Positions 3,535 to 17,698 of a stretch of 64,000 nt of DNA are shown here, piece after piece. The stretch's first letter is position 1. Every line of letters begins with the position of its first letter. Location of the stretch: contig MCFH01000001.1 in the NCBI GenBank assembly GCA_002104945.1, forward strand, positions 2,232,001-2,296,000, read 5' to 3'. The notes beneath the pieces were generated by a model, which worked only from the letters and a program-made list of their open reading frames with translations, was not told the DNA's origin and did not search any database. The DNA is from Piromyces finnis finn (Eukaryota; Fungi; Neocallimastigomycota). Both the position numbers and the translations under genes were made by a program.

Positions 3535-4356
3535 TTTTTTTTATTTACAAACATATTTTAATATATAATTTATTCTATTTAAAAAAATAAAGATAAAGAT
3601 TGAATTCAAAAATTCAACAATAATAGTAACAACAACAGCAACAATAATAAAGCAATAATAATAAGATAAATACTTTTAAGTTTCATATATAATGAATATA
3701 TGAAATTATCAAATGTAGGAATTATTTATATATACATATGATTAATTCATGTAATTTTATTAAAACTAAATAAATAAAAAAAAGAACATTTAATTATTTA
3801 TACCTATTTTTTGAATTTATATTATTTTGTGTAAATATAATGATAATATTCTTTTTATATTTGTTTTTAATTATATAAGTGTATTTAGAATAAAAATATT
3901 TAAGAGATATATAGCATTTGATAGTAAAAACATAATAATATAAAAGTACTAATAATAAAAATCCAATTCTAATAATATCACACCATCACTAAAATCATCA
4001 AAATAAAAATATTTTTACAAAAATAATATAAAACACTAAATTAAAAATAAAAATAAACAATATTTAATTTTTTATATTTTTGTTTATTGTTTATTAATTA
4101 TTATTTATTAATAAATACATTCATTTTTTATGTTATATATGAAATAAGTATTAAATATGAAAAAAAAAAAAATAAGTTATGAATCGATAGTATATGATAT
4201 TAAGGTATTTTAATGAAAAAAAATAATTATGATAATTTGTTTAACTATTTATATACATATGAATTAAATATAATGCTGTGTAAATGTTTATCTTTTTATA
4301 ATTTTTAAATTTAATAATTATTAATATATTAATTAAATATACTAACAATTATTAAT

Positions 4357-5640
4357 TTATAACTTTTCAAAAGCTTGAATGAAATCAGCCTTAATATCAT
4401 CAATATGTTCAATACCAACACTAACTCTTAAAAGTTCTGGTATAATACCACAAGCTTTCTTTTCTTCATCACTAAGTTGTTCATGAGTAGTTGAGTATGG
4501 ATGAACAATAAGTGATTTGGCATCACCAACATTAGCTAAATTTGAAACAAGTTTAAGATTCTCAACAAATACACCTGCTCCTTTAGCTCCACTCTTTAAA
4601 CCAAAAGTAAGAACACCACCATATCCGTTTCTTAAGTATTTCTTAGCGTTAGCATAGGATGGATGATCTGGAAGACCTGCATATGAAACCCATGAAACTT
4701 CTTCACGTGTCTTTAACCATTGTGCAAGTTCTAAAGCATTGTCAACATGTCTTTGAGCTCTTAATGACAAACTTTCTAATCCAAGAAGATTAATAAAAGT
4801 ACTGAATGGATTTTGACATGGTCCAATATCACGAAGAAGTTCAGCTCTGCAACGGAAAATGAAAGCAAGATTGCCGAAAGCTTCTGCAAACTTTAATCCG
4901 TGGTATGATGGACTTGGTTCTGAAAATTGTGGGAATTTACCATTATTCCAATCAAATTTACCACCATCAATAATAGCACCACCAATAACTGTACCATGTC
5001 CATTAATCCATTTTGTGGTGGAATGAATAACAATATCAGCTCCATATTTAATTGGTTGGACTAAATAACCTCCCATACCAAAAGTATTATCAACAATTAA
5101 AGGAATGCCGTGCTTGTGAGCAACAGCAGCAAATGCTTCAAAGTCTGGAACAGCATGAGTTGGATTACCAATAGATTCGAGATAAATGGCTTTGGTTTTA
5201 TCATCAATTAAAGCTTCATAATCTTGTGGATTGAGATTGTCGACAAACTTGAAAGTAATTCCGAAATCTCTGAAAATGTTTTGGAATAAGTTGTGAGTAC
5301 CACCGTAAATAAAACTGGAAGTGATAATATTATCACCATTCTTAGCAATAGCAGCAATAGTAGTGAATTCAGCAGATTGACCACTAGCAGTAACAAGACC
5401 AGCAGCACCACCTTCTAAAGCTGCAAGTCTTTCTTCAGCAACTGCATTGGTTGGATTAGTTAATCTTGAATAAATATTTCCAACCTTCTTTAAACCAAAT
5501 AAATCAGCACCATCCTTAAGATCGGTGAAAACGTATGAAGAAGTAGCGTAGATTGGAACAGCTCTTGCATGAGTAGTTGGATCAACAGTTTGACCAGCGT
5601 GGACTTGTAAAGTTTCAAAATGATATTCTTGTGAAGACAT
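4357..5640 (-). CDS. MET17: O-acetylhomoserine (thiol)-lyase / homocysteine synthase, copy A (427 aa)
   Basis: [11 protein letters not shown]...[31 protein letters not shown]-lysine motif [36 protein letters not shown]. Intronless. Confidence 0.92.
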
Positions 5641-6426
5641 TTTTATTTTGTATATATTTAATTTTAAATGTGTAAATTTGTAAAGGTTTTAATATATATT
5701 CCTTTTTTTTTTTTGTATTATCGAAATTAGAAAAAATTAAAGTATTTTAATTATTTTATAAATTTAAAAATTTCACTTTTATTAAAATTACAAGGTTATT
5801 TTAATATTAATTAAATATTAATAAACTAAATAAAAATTATGATTTTTTTGAGAATTTTTTGTTCTTTTATAATAATAATTTTATTTTTATTTTATTATTT
5901 ATTTTTTTTTTTTTTTTAATTTTTAATTTTTTTATTATTTAATAATGATTTTAAGTAGTCGCCTATATTATTGGTTATAATTTAACAAATGTTAACAATT
6001 TTTAAAATATTTTAAAATTAAAAAAATTTGTCAACATTTGTTAATTTTTAAACAATGATTTTTCTCAGATTAATATTTGAAAAATTAAAAAAAAAAAATT
6101 AATTTTAAAATTTCAATACAGAAATAATTAAAATAATTAAAATAATAATAATAATAATAATCCGACAGATGTTATTTTTACCCAGAATAACTGTAAAAAC
6201 AAATATTTTATTTCAAAACATTTTCTATCAATGCATAATAAATATATAAGTACAATTTTAATTATTAATACTATATAATAAAAGCAATTAAAAAATTTAT
6301 CCGCTATTTTTGCTAAGTAAATTTATATTTATTTTTATTTATTCGGTACTCTATATATAATAACCTTATTATTACTGTTAGCTTCTGTCATTGTAATTCA
6401 AATTTATTTTTAAATATCTTGTATAG

Positions 6427-14613: not shown

Positions 14614-15897
14614 ATGTCTTCACAAGAATATCATTTTGAAACTTTACAAGTCCACGCTGGTCAAACTGTTGATCCAACTACTCATGCAAGAGCTGTTCCA
14701 ATCTACGCTACTTCTTCATACGTTTTCACCGATCTTAAGGATGGTGCTGATTTATTTGGTTTAAAGAAGGTTGGAAATATTTATTCAAGATTAACTAATC
14801 CAACCAATGCAGTTGCTGAAGAAAGACTTGCAGCTTTAGAAGGTGGTGCTGCTGGTCTTGTTACTGCTAGTGGTCAATCTGCTGAATTCACTACTATTGC
14901 TGCTATTGCTAAGAATGGTGATAATATTATCACTTCCAGTTTTATTTACGGTGGTACTCACAACTTATTCCAAAACATTTTCAGAGATTTCGGAATTACT
15001 TTCAAGTTTGTCGACAATCTCAATCCACAAGATTATGAAGCTTTAATTGATGATAAAACCAAAGCCATTTATCTCGAATCTATTGGTAATCCAACTCATG
15101 CTGTTCCAGACTTTGAAGCATTTGCTGCTGTTGCTCACAAGCACGGCATTCCTTTAATTGTTGATAATACTTTTGGTATGGGAGGTTATTTAGTCCAACC
15201 AATTAAATATGGAGCTGATATTGTTATTCATTCCACCACAAAATGGATTAATGGACATGGTACAGTTATTGGTGGTGCTATTATTGATGGTGGTAAATTT
15301 GATTGGAATAATGGTAAATTCCCACAATTTTCAGAACCAAGTCCATCATACCACGGATTAAAGTTTGCAGAAGCTTTCGGCAATCTTGCTTTCATTTTCC
15401 GTTGCAGAGCTGAACTTCTTCGTGATATTGGACCATGTCAAAATCCATTCAGTACTTTTATTAATCTTCTTGGATTAGAAAGTTTGTCATTAAGAGCTCA
15501 AAGACATGTTGACAATGCTTTAGAACTTGCACAATGGTTAAAGACACGTGAAGAAGTTTCATGGGTTTCATATGCAGGTCTTCCAGATCATCCATCCTAT
15601 GCTAACGCTAAGAAATACTTAAGAAACGGATATGGTGGTGTTCTTACTTTTGGTTTAAAGAGTGGAGCTAAAGGAGCAGGTGTATTTGTTGAGAATCTTA
15701 AACTTGTTTCAAATTTAGCTAATGTTGGTGATGCCAAATCACTTATTGTTCATCCATACTCAACTACTCATGAACAACTTAGTGATGAAGAAAAGAAAGC
15801 TTGTGGTATTATACCAGAACTTTTAAGAGTTAGTGTTGGTATTGAACATATTGATGATATTAAGGCTGATTTCATTCAAGCTTTTGAAAAGTTATAA
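14614..15897 (+). CDS. MET17: O-acetylhomoserine (thiol)-lyase, copy D (427 aa)
   Basis: Mirror of copy A; the translated protein is identical to copy A. Confidence 0.92.
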
Positions 15898-17698
15898 ATT
15901 AATAATTGTTAGTATATTTAATTAATATATTAATAATTATTAAATTTAAAAATTATAAAAAGATAAACATTTACACAGCATTATATTTAATTCATATGTA
16001 TATAAATAGTTAAACAAATTATCATAATTATTTTTTTTCATTAAAATACCTTAATATCATATACTATCGATTCATAACTTATTTTTTTTTTTTTCATATT
16101 TAATACTTATTTCATATATAACATAAAAAATGAATGTATTTATTAATAAATAATAATTAATAAACAATAAACAAAAATATAAAAAATTAAATATTGTTTA
16201 TTTTTATTTTTAATTTAGTGTTTTATATTATTTTTGTAAAAATATTTTTATTTTGATGATTTTAGTGATGGTGTGATATTATTAGTAGTATTTTACTTAT
16301 TAATTTATTGAAATATTATATCTAGCAAAAAAATAGCTTTAAGTGGAGTTTAATAATATTGACTATTGGAAAAATAAAAGTAAACAATAAAAAAAATAAT
16401 TTTTCTTAAGAATATAGATTATTTTTTTATTATTTAAATAATTATTTTTTAAATTAATCACCAATTAAAAATGTTAAGATGATCTATCTATGTTAATTTG
16501 TACAGGATTTTAAAACTGATACTTTAAATTATATATATTTTAATAGAATATATTATTTTGTAAATAATATTATAGATACATTATAATTATAATAGAATGT
16601 AAATATTTGTTAATATTTTTTTTTAACAACAACAGCTATTTTAAACTACTATTATTTTAATTAAAGTTATAATACATTTGAAAGTAAATTTAAAAATATA
16701 TTTAATTAAATAAAAATGAATGAAAAATAAATAGATACATTATAGTAATTTAAATTAAAGTCAGACTTTAATATTCACTGGATTATTAGAACTTTCATTA
16801 ATTAAATTACTATTTAAACTAATAGAATTATCCAGACTTAAGGAATTATAATTATCATCTTTACTATTACCTCTTGCTAATGGGATCATTAATATTATCT
16901 TTAATGTTATTTTTATTATTACTAACACTATAATTATTGTATTATTACTATTCCTAATGTTGTTATTTTCATTGTTATTTTTTTACTTATAGTTATAGTT
17001 ATTATTATTAATGGAACTATTTGAATGATTTTTGCTAAGTAATTGAATATTTGGACTAGATAATTGTAATGTTTAATATGAATATTATTAAAATTTGGAC
17101 ATTCAGTTAGTTAATATTAATTACTTTGATTATCATTTTTGAAATATGGGTAGTAGTTAGAAACCGTATCAACTAATTTAACAGCTTTATCAATATTAGA
17201 ATCTTATTTGTTTTGCGCTATTTACCTTCAATTAACCAATGTTGACTATTTTTGTCAAAGATCCTGCAAAATACAACAAGAACAATCATTTTATATCAAA
17301 AGTATAAGCTATGCAAATATTTTTATTACTTTATACACTTTTAAAAATTTAAAATAAAATCATAATAAAATTGAATATTAATATTTTTTTTAAACACTTT
17401 TTAATGATATATTTTTTATGACATTTTTGTATTATTTTTTTTATTGCTTTAATTTTTTACACTTAAATAAATACAAAATTAGTGTAAATATAGAAAATAA
17501 TTTTTAGCGATATAAAAAAGAAAAACTTATAGTTTTTTTCTTTGATATTTACCAATATTATAATGAATATATATGTCTAATTAACTATAAATTTTTTATA
17601 TTTGTTATAACTGTTATAATAATAAATATTATATATATAAAATGCTATGATAAATATGAAAAATAAGACAAGTATAATTATAATGCTTAACAAATGTA

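Follow-up and report, generated by a model that had tools for sequence, protein, structure and literature searches.

Four intact genes of the MET17 type and a truncated fifth copy (fragment E) lie close together in a 64-kb stretch of Piromyces finnis DNA, hereafter the window, which spans positions 2,232,001-2,296,000 of a 2,625,575-bp contig (Table 1). The coding sequence of gene D is identical to that of gene A, and gene C differs from gene B by two synonymous changes (nt 93 and 303) and the substitution I400T (nt 1199). The four intact copies show only two amino-acid differences among them. The profile PF01053 matched all four products at approximately 435 bits over profile positions 1 to 381 (437 bits for gene A). 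TIGR01326 was matched over its full length, positions 1 to 418, by the products of A and B, the two that were checked, with scores of 637 to 640 bits for a curated cut-off of 495.1 bits. The PLP-lysine motif HSTTKW at residues 206 to 211, an instance of the conserved S-x-T-K-W pattern, is invariant in the four copies and aligns with HSATKW of the solved fungal sulfhydrylase FUB7 (8erb), which gene B matched with an E value of 8e-168; the match of gene B to the homocysteine/cysteine synthase 8ovh had an E value of 5e-166. Each gene is predicted to encode a PLP enzyme that would condense O-acetylhomoserine and sulfide to form homocysteine. A preliminary description of this DNA had proposed four intact reading frames of a sulfur-assimilation gene, and this holds: all four are intact, each retains its PLP-lysine motif, and the enzyme represents the sulfide-fixing step in sulfur amino-acid synthesis. 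The genes are already present in the public annotation, and the locus reveals no new enzyme and no new mechanism.

Table 1. Features of the MET17-type gene cluster of P. finnis (positions within the window)
Feature	Position	Strand	Length	Description
Left arm, outer palindrome	3969-9137		5169 bp	Genes A and B, head to head; self-comparison and global alignment
Gene A	4357-5640	-	427 aa	Short tail, ends ..AFEKL; O-acetylhomoserine sulfhydrylase / homocysteine synthase (MET17 type)
A-B intergenic region	5641-7398		1758 bp	Presumed shared divergent promoter, from gene orientation only
Hairpin indel	5965-6025		61 bp	In A-B intergenic region
(AAT)n tract	6427-6525			In A-B intergenic region
(ATATAG)n tract	6849-6905			In A-B intergenic region
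Gene B	7399-8718	+	439 aa	Long tail, ends ..VNDENLIQSFNKL; O-acetylhomoserine sulfhydrylase
Unique spacer	9138-11262		2125 bp	Between the arms
LINE remnant	9406-11129			In spacer; degenerate, stop-ridden; dispersed non-LTR retrotransposon
(ATT)n array	10764-10945			In spacer LINE remnant
Right arm, outer palindrome	11263-16285		5023 bp	Reverse complement; genes C and D, head to head
Gene C	11680-12999	-	439 aa	Long-tail copy
Gene D	14614-15897	+	427 aa	Short-tail copy
Old dispersed repeat	16615-17240			Separates right arm from fragment E, in place of the missing part of E
Fragment E	17699-18086	-		Truncated fifth copy

Self-comparison of the window and global alignment of the arms recovered the inverted duplication of a divergent gene pair reported in the preliminary description. 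A repeat of such length and similarity cannot be due to chance. The arms, which carry two intact genes each, are 99.7% identical when substitutions are counted; 11 substitutions and 4 indels separate them. The substitutions, predominantly transitions, are found at left-arm positions 6066, 6417, 6443, 6520, 7095, 7491, 7701, 8597, 8736, 8937 and 9122. Of the indels, the 61-bp one at 5965 lies at a small hairpin, those at 6448 (53 bp) and 6849 (30 bp) consist of (AAT)n and (ATATAG)n, respectively, and the last, at 8976, measures 2 bp. The right-arm counterpart of the A-B intergenic region is shorter by 144 bp. The outermost 1998 bp of the arms are 100% identical. Homology is lost abruptly at all four arm ends, and comparison with shuffled sequences detected no mirroring beyond shuffle level either at the spacer ends or in the outer flanks. 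Inside each arm, the two coding sequences (A and B, or C and D) form a further inverted repeat of 1303 bp with 99.4% identity, making the structure a nested palindrome.

Evidence that the arms are physically linked comes from a single PacBio assembly of 56.46 Mb, obtained from reads of fragments >10 kb with Falcon, FinisherSC and Quiver. An assembly of this kind, together with the perfect identity of the outer arm ends, might indicate that the arms represent two alleles, or copies of a single locus, misjoined in inverted orientation, or that a fold-back chimeric read was incorporated into the contig. We consider this explanation very improbable. Alleles would remain homologous past the arms, but here the homology stops at four points, and the outer flanks are unrelated to each other, as are the two spacer ends. 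A missed-adapter fold-back would produce a spacer-less palindrome of one molecule that polishes to identity, usually at a contig end. In contrast, the locus has a unique spacer, 11 substitutions and three long indels, with more than 377 kb of contig beyond it. Moreover, residue T400 of gene C is found in all other anaerobic-fungus homologs aligned, while gene B has Ile, a difference that would not readily stem from an error or a mirrored copy. During polishing, reads mapping to both arms could have removed some of the arm differences or introduced others. Nevertheless, allelic or mirror misassembly is unlikely, because the flanks and the spacer are unique and the site is interior to the contig. 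The transitions, the microsatellite length differences and the hairpin-associated indel likewise bear out the earlier view that the arms are not mirror copies. The P. finnis locus is thus probably a real cluster of four intact MET17-type genes and a truncated one, built in two layers.

The spacer is largely occupied by a LINE remnant with 488 candidate related places in the genome; the 40 that were scored gave 133 matches at 70-85% identity, and a related genomic copy encodes RVT_1. Fragment E, annotated as a 107-aa hypothetical protein of Piromyces finnis (ORX61192.1), covers nt ~14-325 of the coding sequence at 98% identity to the intact copies and lacks the last three quarters of the gene. 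Its ~62-64 nt of upstream sequence are much more diverged and resemble those upstream of B and C. The dispersed repeat that takes the place of the missing part has 761 candidate places in the genome at ~70% identity, and tblastn detected no coding-sequence remnant in it. Elsewhere in the window are a five-copy array (52.7-63.9 kb) and three-copy pectinesterase-region repeats, and a nearby locus carries a transposase-like gene in three copies, with one inverted pair. The P. finnis genome duplicates many genes, as these further arrays illustrate.

The coding bodies of the four intact genes are 99.7-100% identical, and the flanks of the short-tail and long-tail genes are unalignable: over 300 bp upstream and 300 bp downstream, their identity of 0.69-0.70 equals that of shuffled controls. 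Within the 1277-nt body, short and long genes differ at one fixed site, nt 1223 (V408A). Both tail types also exist in Piromyces sp. E2, Anaeromyces and Neocallimastix. In a tree of the bodies, short and long genes nonetheless grouped together within P. finnis (100/99), A. robustus (97/94) and two further taxa. Monophyly of the long-tail genes, a group picked for this test after the tree had been seen, was rejected (delta lnL 290, p-AU 3e-57). Short and long genes share 99.5-99.8% identity within P. finnis and 96% within A. robustus, whereas genes of the same type share 84-86% between genera; the coding bodies are more alike within species than between them. A metagenome scan for related DNA yielded two short contigs.

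As the tail types are common to several genera and the trees group the genes by genome, the head-to-head pair appears to be old and homogenised by gene conversion. The conflict between the gene tree and an older structural marker, the tail type, is what concerted evolution would be expected to produce, and the sequence comparisons provide good support for conversion between copies at the level of the coding sequence. The same pattern could in theory result from several independent losses of the tail, but an identical stop after ..AFEKL would have had to arise each time. The first layer would consequently be an old head-to-head short/long pair around a divergent promoter region of 1.6-1.8 kb, predating the split of Piromyces, Anaeromyces and Neocallimastix. 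Recurrent gene conversion would keep the coding bodies of all copies near-identical, including the 5′ stub in fragment E, with tracts ending where homology ends, i.e., some tens of bases before the ATG on one side and at codon 426 on the other. Four copies have indeed been amplified, as initially described, but their near-identity does not simply reflect a recent fourfold amplification, since the pair is most likely old and gene-converted.

The second layer would be a later inverted duplication of the whole 5-kb pair, generating the spaced palindrome across a 2.1-kb stretch that already held the old LINE remnant. Alternatively, the outer palindrome itself might be old and held at its present identity by arm-to-arm conversion, as in sex-chromosome palindromes, a reading that we regard as doubtful. 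All 11 substitutions fall in the inner 3 kb of the arms and none in the outer 1998 bp (P = 0.004), and the identical block ends at the 61-bp indel. This non-uniform divergence is suggestive only, yet arm-to-arm conversion probably acts on the outer 2 kb too, and conversion is clearly at work on the coding sequences. The LINE remnant is old, judging by its divergence from its relatives, and its insertion into an already existing palindrome centre would imply that the arms have been maintained since then; however, the element may simply predate the duplication. A. robustus likewise has four clustered genes, but they comprise one long and three short genes instead of two of each, which looks like an independent amplification, and Piromyces sp. 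E2 has only one adjacent pair at the same level of protein identity. We retain a later duplication of an old pair. Recombination between the arms could plausibly invert the spacer.

Replication template switching or break repair between strands is the most likely mechanism of this duplication. The layout had been likened to that of ODIRA. This process yields an inverted triplication (2n+1 copies, of which the central one is inverted) whose junctions lie at short interrupted inverted repeats, and its products can decay by recombination (PMC4689423). In such a scenario, as with yeast SUL1, the inverted amplicon would have arisen under sulfur limitation from a replication error at short inverted repeats. 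The inverted copies of a sulfur-related gene fit this scheme, as does the presence of a truncated extra copy, E, just beyond the right arm. However, self-comparison identified two arms only and no inverted triplication, and the orientation and upstream type of fragment E are those of gene C, not those of the short-tail gene A expected of a third forward copy. The inner junctions lie 2125 bp apart, and their sole complementarity is that of an A7-10 run on one side with a T7 run on the other; pairing between them is possible but means little in DNA of 80% A+T. No recognisable inverted repeat was detected at the outer junction. Classical fold-back followed by breakage-fusion-bridge cycles loses or mirrors the distal sequence, whereas the right flank is ordinary unique DNA. 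With its two arms and LINE-bearing loop, the locus does not have an ODIRA-type layout, and an ODIRA or fold-back origin is highly unlikely.

Neither NIR_SIR nor ATP-sulfurylase domains were found in the P. finnis genome, which thus lacks sulfite reductase and ATP sulfurylase. It possesses MET2, i.e., a homoserine O-acetyltransferase (TIGR01392-like, 458 bits), and cysteine synthase. In the absence of the two sulfate-reduction enzymes, sulfur must enter in reduced form from the gut, and sulfide must do so through enzymes such as those of the MET17 type. Higher dosage of this entry enzyme may be beneficial, and selection for dosage is plausible. P. finnis was isolated from the horse gut, and the rumen setting invoked initially was an assumption.

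The gene had also been taken to be normally single-copy, which does not apply in this phylum. In A. robustus, four genes bear consecutive accession numbers (ORX85017-85020), Piromyces sp. E2 has an adjacent short/long pair (OUM68496/68497) and two more genes, and N. californiae has at least three; adjacency in these species is deduced solely from consecutive accession numbers. P. finnis itself has a fifth intact paralog, 44% identical, on another contig. The nearest relatives outside the anaerobic fungi are fungal homocysteine synthases with ~62% identity, indicating that the gene was vertically inherited and not acquired from bacteria.

Alternatively, local duplication, to which the genome is prone, may have generated the extra copies neutrally, without any selection for dosage. 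This is a possibility to be taken seriously, albeit one to which we give less than even weight: the arrays in the same window and the transposase-like copies nearby are in line with it, and copy E has already decayed. On the other hand, the four copies are all intact and nearly invariant in sequence, A. robustus has amplified the enzyme on its own, Piromyces sp. E2 and N. californiae each carry it in multiple copies, and sulfide capture becomes a key step in a genome that lacks sulfate reduction. A broader proposal is that anaerobic gut fungi lost sulfate reduction and amplified MET17 repeatedly and independently (four copies in P. finnis, four in A. robustus and several in Piromyces sp. E2 and Neocallimastix), with inverted-repeat clusters and conversion serving as a module for dosage and error correction that preserves two tail isoforms of distinct roles. 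We regard this as unlikely; if true, the nested palindrome of P. finnis would best illustrate an adaptive architecture extending across the phylum.

Full-text searches for Neocallimastigomycota together with O-acetylhomoserine or sulfhydrylase returned no paper, and no description of this architecture or of its concerted evolution was found. The locus clearly adds a new case to a known type of gene amplification. If the structure and the conversion hold, the locus, short enough for a single long read to span, could serve as a compact model for the way palindromes and conversion preserve multi-copy genes in a eukaryotic genome extremely rich in A+T and in repeats. In anaerobic gut fungi, where sulfate reduction is lacking, it would also suggest that dosage pressure acts on sulfide capture, which is of relevance for culture media and for the engineering of these fungi for biomass conversion.

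The ampliconic palindromes of primate sex chromosomes, reportedly described by Rozen and Skaletsky in 2003, undergo arm-to-arm gene conversion. The P. finnis locus shares with them near-identical inverted arms, a unique spacer, intact gene pairs, potential inversion of the spacer and identity kept by intrachromosomal conversion, although between the arms of P. finnis the latter is only suggested. It differs by the size of its arms (5 kb compared with 9 kb to 1.45 Mb), by its cargo, a housekeeping metabolic enzyme instead of testis genes, by its host, an early-diverging fungus, and by a second, inner inverted repeat limited to the coding sequences and nested in each arm. In the amplification of yeast SUL1 by ODIRA under sulfate limitation, inverted copies of a sulfur-acquisition gene are similarly found and adaptive dosage has been proposed (PMC4689423). 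That product is an interstitial inverted triplication with short interrupted inverted repeats and an origin inside, whereas P. finnis has two arms, a 2.1-kb LINE-remnant spacer and no third copy of the right kind. The genes belong to the same family as fungal MET17 (S. cerevisiae Met17, PMC10729969; 8ovh; FUB7, 8erb), which they match over the full length. Instead of one gene, however, P. finnis has four clustered near-identical copies with two tail forms, and as it lacks the upstream sulfate-reduction pathway, its enzyme would use external sulfide. Finally, as in other inverted paralog pairs under concerted evolution, the blocks of identity are sharp and coincide with the coding sequences, and the tree groups paralogs by genome. 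Unlike in the general case, the conversion boundary lies at the last shared codon, and the short and long tail isoforms appear to have been preserved across genera despite repeated homogenisation of the body.

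The spaced palindrome reported in the preliminary description is real and was well described, as its layout was reproduced by self-BLAST and global alignment; the ORF coordinates likewise bear out its four intact genes. They encode MET17-type O-acetylhomoserine sulfhydrylases and form two head-to-head pairs, A with B in the left arm and C with D in the right arm. The interpretation placed on this structure was right in part: the architecture stood, and the views on its origin and on the usual copy number of the gene were not supported.

Coordinates of the palindrome, its genes and the truncated fifth copy (window positions)
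Feature	Position	Strand	Description
Left arm	3969-9137		from repeat finding, self-BLAST and global alignment
Gene A	4357-5640	-	intact ORF
Gene B	7399-8718	+	intact ORF
Spacer	9138-11262		2125 bp; from repeat finding, self-BLAST and global alignment
Right arm	11263-16285		reverse complement of left arm; from repeat finding, self-BLAST and global alignment
Gene C	11680-12999	-	intact ORF
Gene D	14614-15897	+	intact ORF
Fragment E	17699-18086	-	CDS nt about 14-325 at 98% identity

The P. finnis assembly, published at 56.46 Mb, was built from PacBio reads with Falcon, FinisherSC and Quiver (PMC5622200). An assembly artefact is unlikely. A misjoin of two alleles would give homology past the arms, but none was seen there. 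A fold-back read with a missed adapter would give an identical palindrome devoid of a spacer, typically at a contig end, whereas the arms flank a unique 2.1-kb spacer, differ from each other at 15 places and lie more than 377 kb from the end of their 2,625,575-bp contig, contig 1, on which the window spans positions 2,232,001-2,296,000. In addition, Thr400 of gene C is the residue found in every other homolog aligned, while B has Ile.

At each of the four arm ends the homology breaks off sharply, and no continuation of the palindrome above shuffle level was detected in the spacer or the outer flanks. The inner junctions carry a run of A7-10 on one side and of T7 on the other; at an A+T content of 80%, such runs are uninformative. 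Global alignment of the arms revealed 11 substitutions, mostly transitions, and four indels: one of 61 bp, one of 2 bp and two in microsatellites, of 53 bp in (AAT)n and 30 bp in (ATATAG)n. The longest of them removed one arm of a small hairpin-forming sequence: the arm-specific segment (window 5965-6025) includes the reverse complement of the next 15 to 17 nt, and the right arm lacks one hairpin arm. A 3-nt microhomology at the deletion ends is the pattern expected for replication slippage. All 11 substitutions fall in the inner 3 kb of the arms; the outer 1998 bp, as far as the 61-bp indel, are identical (P = 0.004 under a uniform rate). This suggests either a recent arm-to-arm conversion tract halted by heterology or an effect of polishing. 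The outer palindrome may be young, or it may be old and maintained by conversion. Most of the spacer is the decayed relic of a dispersed non-LTR retrotransposon, with 488 candidate places genome-wide, 40 of which were scored and gave 133 matches at 70 to 85% identity; a related genomic copy of this element encodes a reverse transcriptase. No Rfam family matched window positions 1-22000.

The identity of the genes is clear. All four products match PF01053 end to end; of these, A and B were also compared with NCBIfam and score about 640 bits against TIGR01326 (O-acetylhomoserine/O-acetylserine sulfhydrylase; cut-off, 495). Solved fungal sulfhydrylases and a homocysteine/cysteine synthase give full-length alignments with them (E about 1e-167), and the PLP-lysine motif HSTTKW is kept in all four copies. 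A and D encode a 427-residue short-tail form ending in AFEKL, and B and C a 439-residue long-tail form with 12 residues more. Their nearest proteins are from Piromyces sp. E2 (93%), Anaeromyces and Neocallimastix, followed, at about 62% identity, by homocysteine synthases of Mucoromycota and chytrids, with bacterial sequences interleaved at similar distance only. As the closest relatives outside the anaerobic fungi are fungal homocysteine synthases, the cluster genes are vertically inherited fungal MET17 genes, and horizontal transfer from bacteria is rejected. The MET-regulon E-box CACGTG is absent from the intergenic regions, including the presumed divergent promoter; it occurs once inside each CDS and once in a SINE in the left flank.

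The two CDSs of each arm also form an inverted repeat (1303 bp, 99.4% identity), so that one palindrome is nested in another. Site-by-site comparison showed that the CDSs of A and D are identical, that B and C differ at two synonymous sites and by I400T, and that short- and long-tail genes are distinguished by a single fixed difference (nt 1223, V408A) over the 1277-nt coding body that they share. This identity is lost at codon 426/427 and, at the other end, some tens of bases before the ATG; over 300 bp on each side, the flanks are 0.69 to 0.70 identical, compared with 0.68 to 0.69 for shuffled sequence. Had the pair been duplicated recently, the copied segment would need to equal the coding body exactly. 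A short tail that stops after AFEKL and a recognizably homologous long tail are both present in Piromyces sp. E2, Anaeromyces robustus, Neocallimastix californiae and several further taxa. In a maximum-likelihood tree of the protein bodies, short forms nevertheless join long forms by genome, with support of 100/99 in P. finnis, 97/94 in A. robustus, and 96/89 and 100/95 in two further taxa. Forcing the long-tail genes into one clade, a group picked after the first tree had been seen, cost 290 log-likelihood units (p-AU 3e-57). Short/long identity within a genome is 99.5 to 99.8% in P. finnis, 96% in A. robustus and 89% in Piromyces sp. E2, while same-type identity between genera is 84 to 86%. 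The bounds of the identity block, the tails common to several genera and the grouping by genome together form the signature of concerted evolution. We conclude that the head-to-head pair is old and that its coding bodies are homogenized repeatedly by gene conversion, with tracts bounded where homology stops.

Three homologs from JGI metagenomes or metatranscriptomes (P0013, P0014 and P0018) are mosaic: over roughly the first 80 residues they are similar to the divergent "class II" short genes (Neocallimastix ORY37325, Piromyces E2 OUM62986), and over the remainder they match protein P0005. They are recombinant paralogs or chimeric assemblies.

Fragment E retains, upstream of its CDS part, about 62 to 64 nt of the B/C type that are far more diverged than that part. 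This fresh CDS patch beside old flanks reproduces the conversion pattern of the intact copies. The remainder of the gene is missing, its place being occupied by an old dispersed repeat, and the 107-residue product is identical to P. finnis ORX61192.1. Sensitive blastn and tblastn searches of both flanks for a third ODIRA copy or a tandem copy of the right arm returned fragment E only. E lies 1413 bp outside the right arm, and the matching part of C lies 1412 bp inside the inner end of that arm. The offset from the 5' segment of C (12675-13061) to E (17699-18086), 5023 to 5024 bp, thus matches the length of the right arm, 5023 bp, within 1 bp, despite unrelated intervening sequences: positions 16286-17698, which contain the old dispersed repeat, have nothing in common with 11263-12674. 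The spacing gives the impression of a former tandem repeat of the arm. D (plus strand) and E (minus strand) are, moreover, mirror-symmetric around position 16318. This arrangement may be a coincidence or the relic of an older alternating array.

A six-frame search of the whole assembly (56,455,805 bp, 232 contigs) identified, besides the four copies and a 105-codon fragment (window 17699-18013), a single other intact member of the family, on contig 2 and of only 44% identity. This gene (199008-200279, or 1525-2796 of stretch L005; minus strand, 423 residues) scores 581 bits against TIGR01326, and its best equivalog is PRK06702, a bacterial-type bifunctional sulfhydrylase. Contrary to the notion that MET17 is usually single-copy, A. 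robustus has four consecutive accessions (ORX85017-85020; one long and three nearly identical short), Piromyces sp. E2 an adjacent short/long pair (OUM68496/68497) and two further genes, and N. californiae at least three MET17-type genes. A metagenome scan for synteny in other species yielded only two short contigs of anaerobic fungi (L009 and L010), neither of which carried neighboring genes.

Six-frame whole-genome searches gave no match to ATP sulfurylase (PF01747) or to the sulfite/nitrite reductase heme domain (PF01077), with positive controls as expected; a MET2-like homoserine O-acetyltransferase and cysteine synthases are present. Sulfur must then enter in reduced form, with MET17 as one of two entry points, and the missing domains are consistent with obligate use of reduced sulfur. 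Parallel amplification across the anaerobic fungi favors a dosage benefit, as had been proposed; however, many genes are locally duplicated in the P. finnis genome. The rumen setting invoked for this benefit is better termed herbivore gut, as P. finnis was isolated from horse feces. We found no literature linking Neocallimastigomycota with O-acetylhomoserine or sulfhydrylase.

Across 264 kb (the window and the adjoining 200 kb), the only other local inverted gene pair belongs to a transposase-like family. Three PD-(D/E)XK transposase-family genes (PF12784), 96 to 98% alike, lie on contig 1 at about 2,077,500-2,088,400 (L101-L102), two of them paired in convergent, inverted orientation 1.1 kb apart. 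Direct repeats also occur. A five-copy array at window 52720-63914 (starts near 52.7, 53.9, 60.5, 61.4 and 62.5 kb; 77 to 98% identity) lies within a patch of 30 to 37% GC and probably represents a tandem gene family; positions 54701 and 63251 mark another pair at 98%. A pectinesterase-containing segment (PF01095 in ORF 19923-20399) is present at 19812-20753, 24149-24991 and 27126-27968, the right-hand two being 99% identical and the left one 72 to 79%. Direct copies of 5.5 kb with 97.5% identity at about 2,038,660-2,044,150 and 2,198,110-2,203,565 of contig 1 (L097-L098 and L113-L114), and inverted partial copies near 2,079,400-2,084,000, are probably LINE elements.

The most economical origin of the outer palindrome would be template switching during replication, or repair of a break, whereby the 5-kb pair was copied back across a LINE-bearing stretch. 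ODIRA is defined by an inverted triplication, short interrupted inverted repeats at the junctions and an included origin (PMC4689423). The P. finnis palindrome differs in having neither the triplication nor such junctions, which speaks against the ODIRA-type origin first suggested. Our analysis adds to the preliminary description the nested architecture, strong evidence that two conserved isoforms evolve in concert, the LINE-derived spacer, a fifth, decayed copy, and MET17 amplification as a trait of the phylum and not a peculiarity of the P. finnis locus. The locus is a gene-bearing palindrome with conversion, a kind already known.
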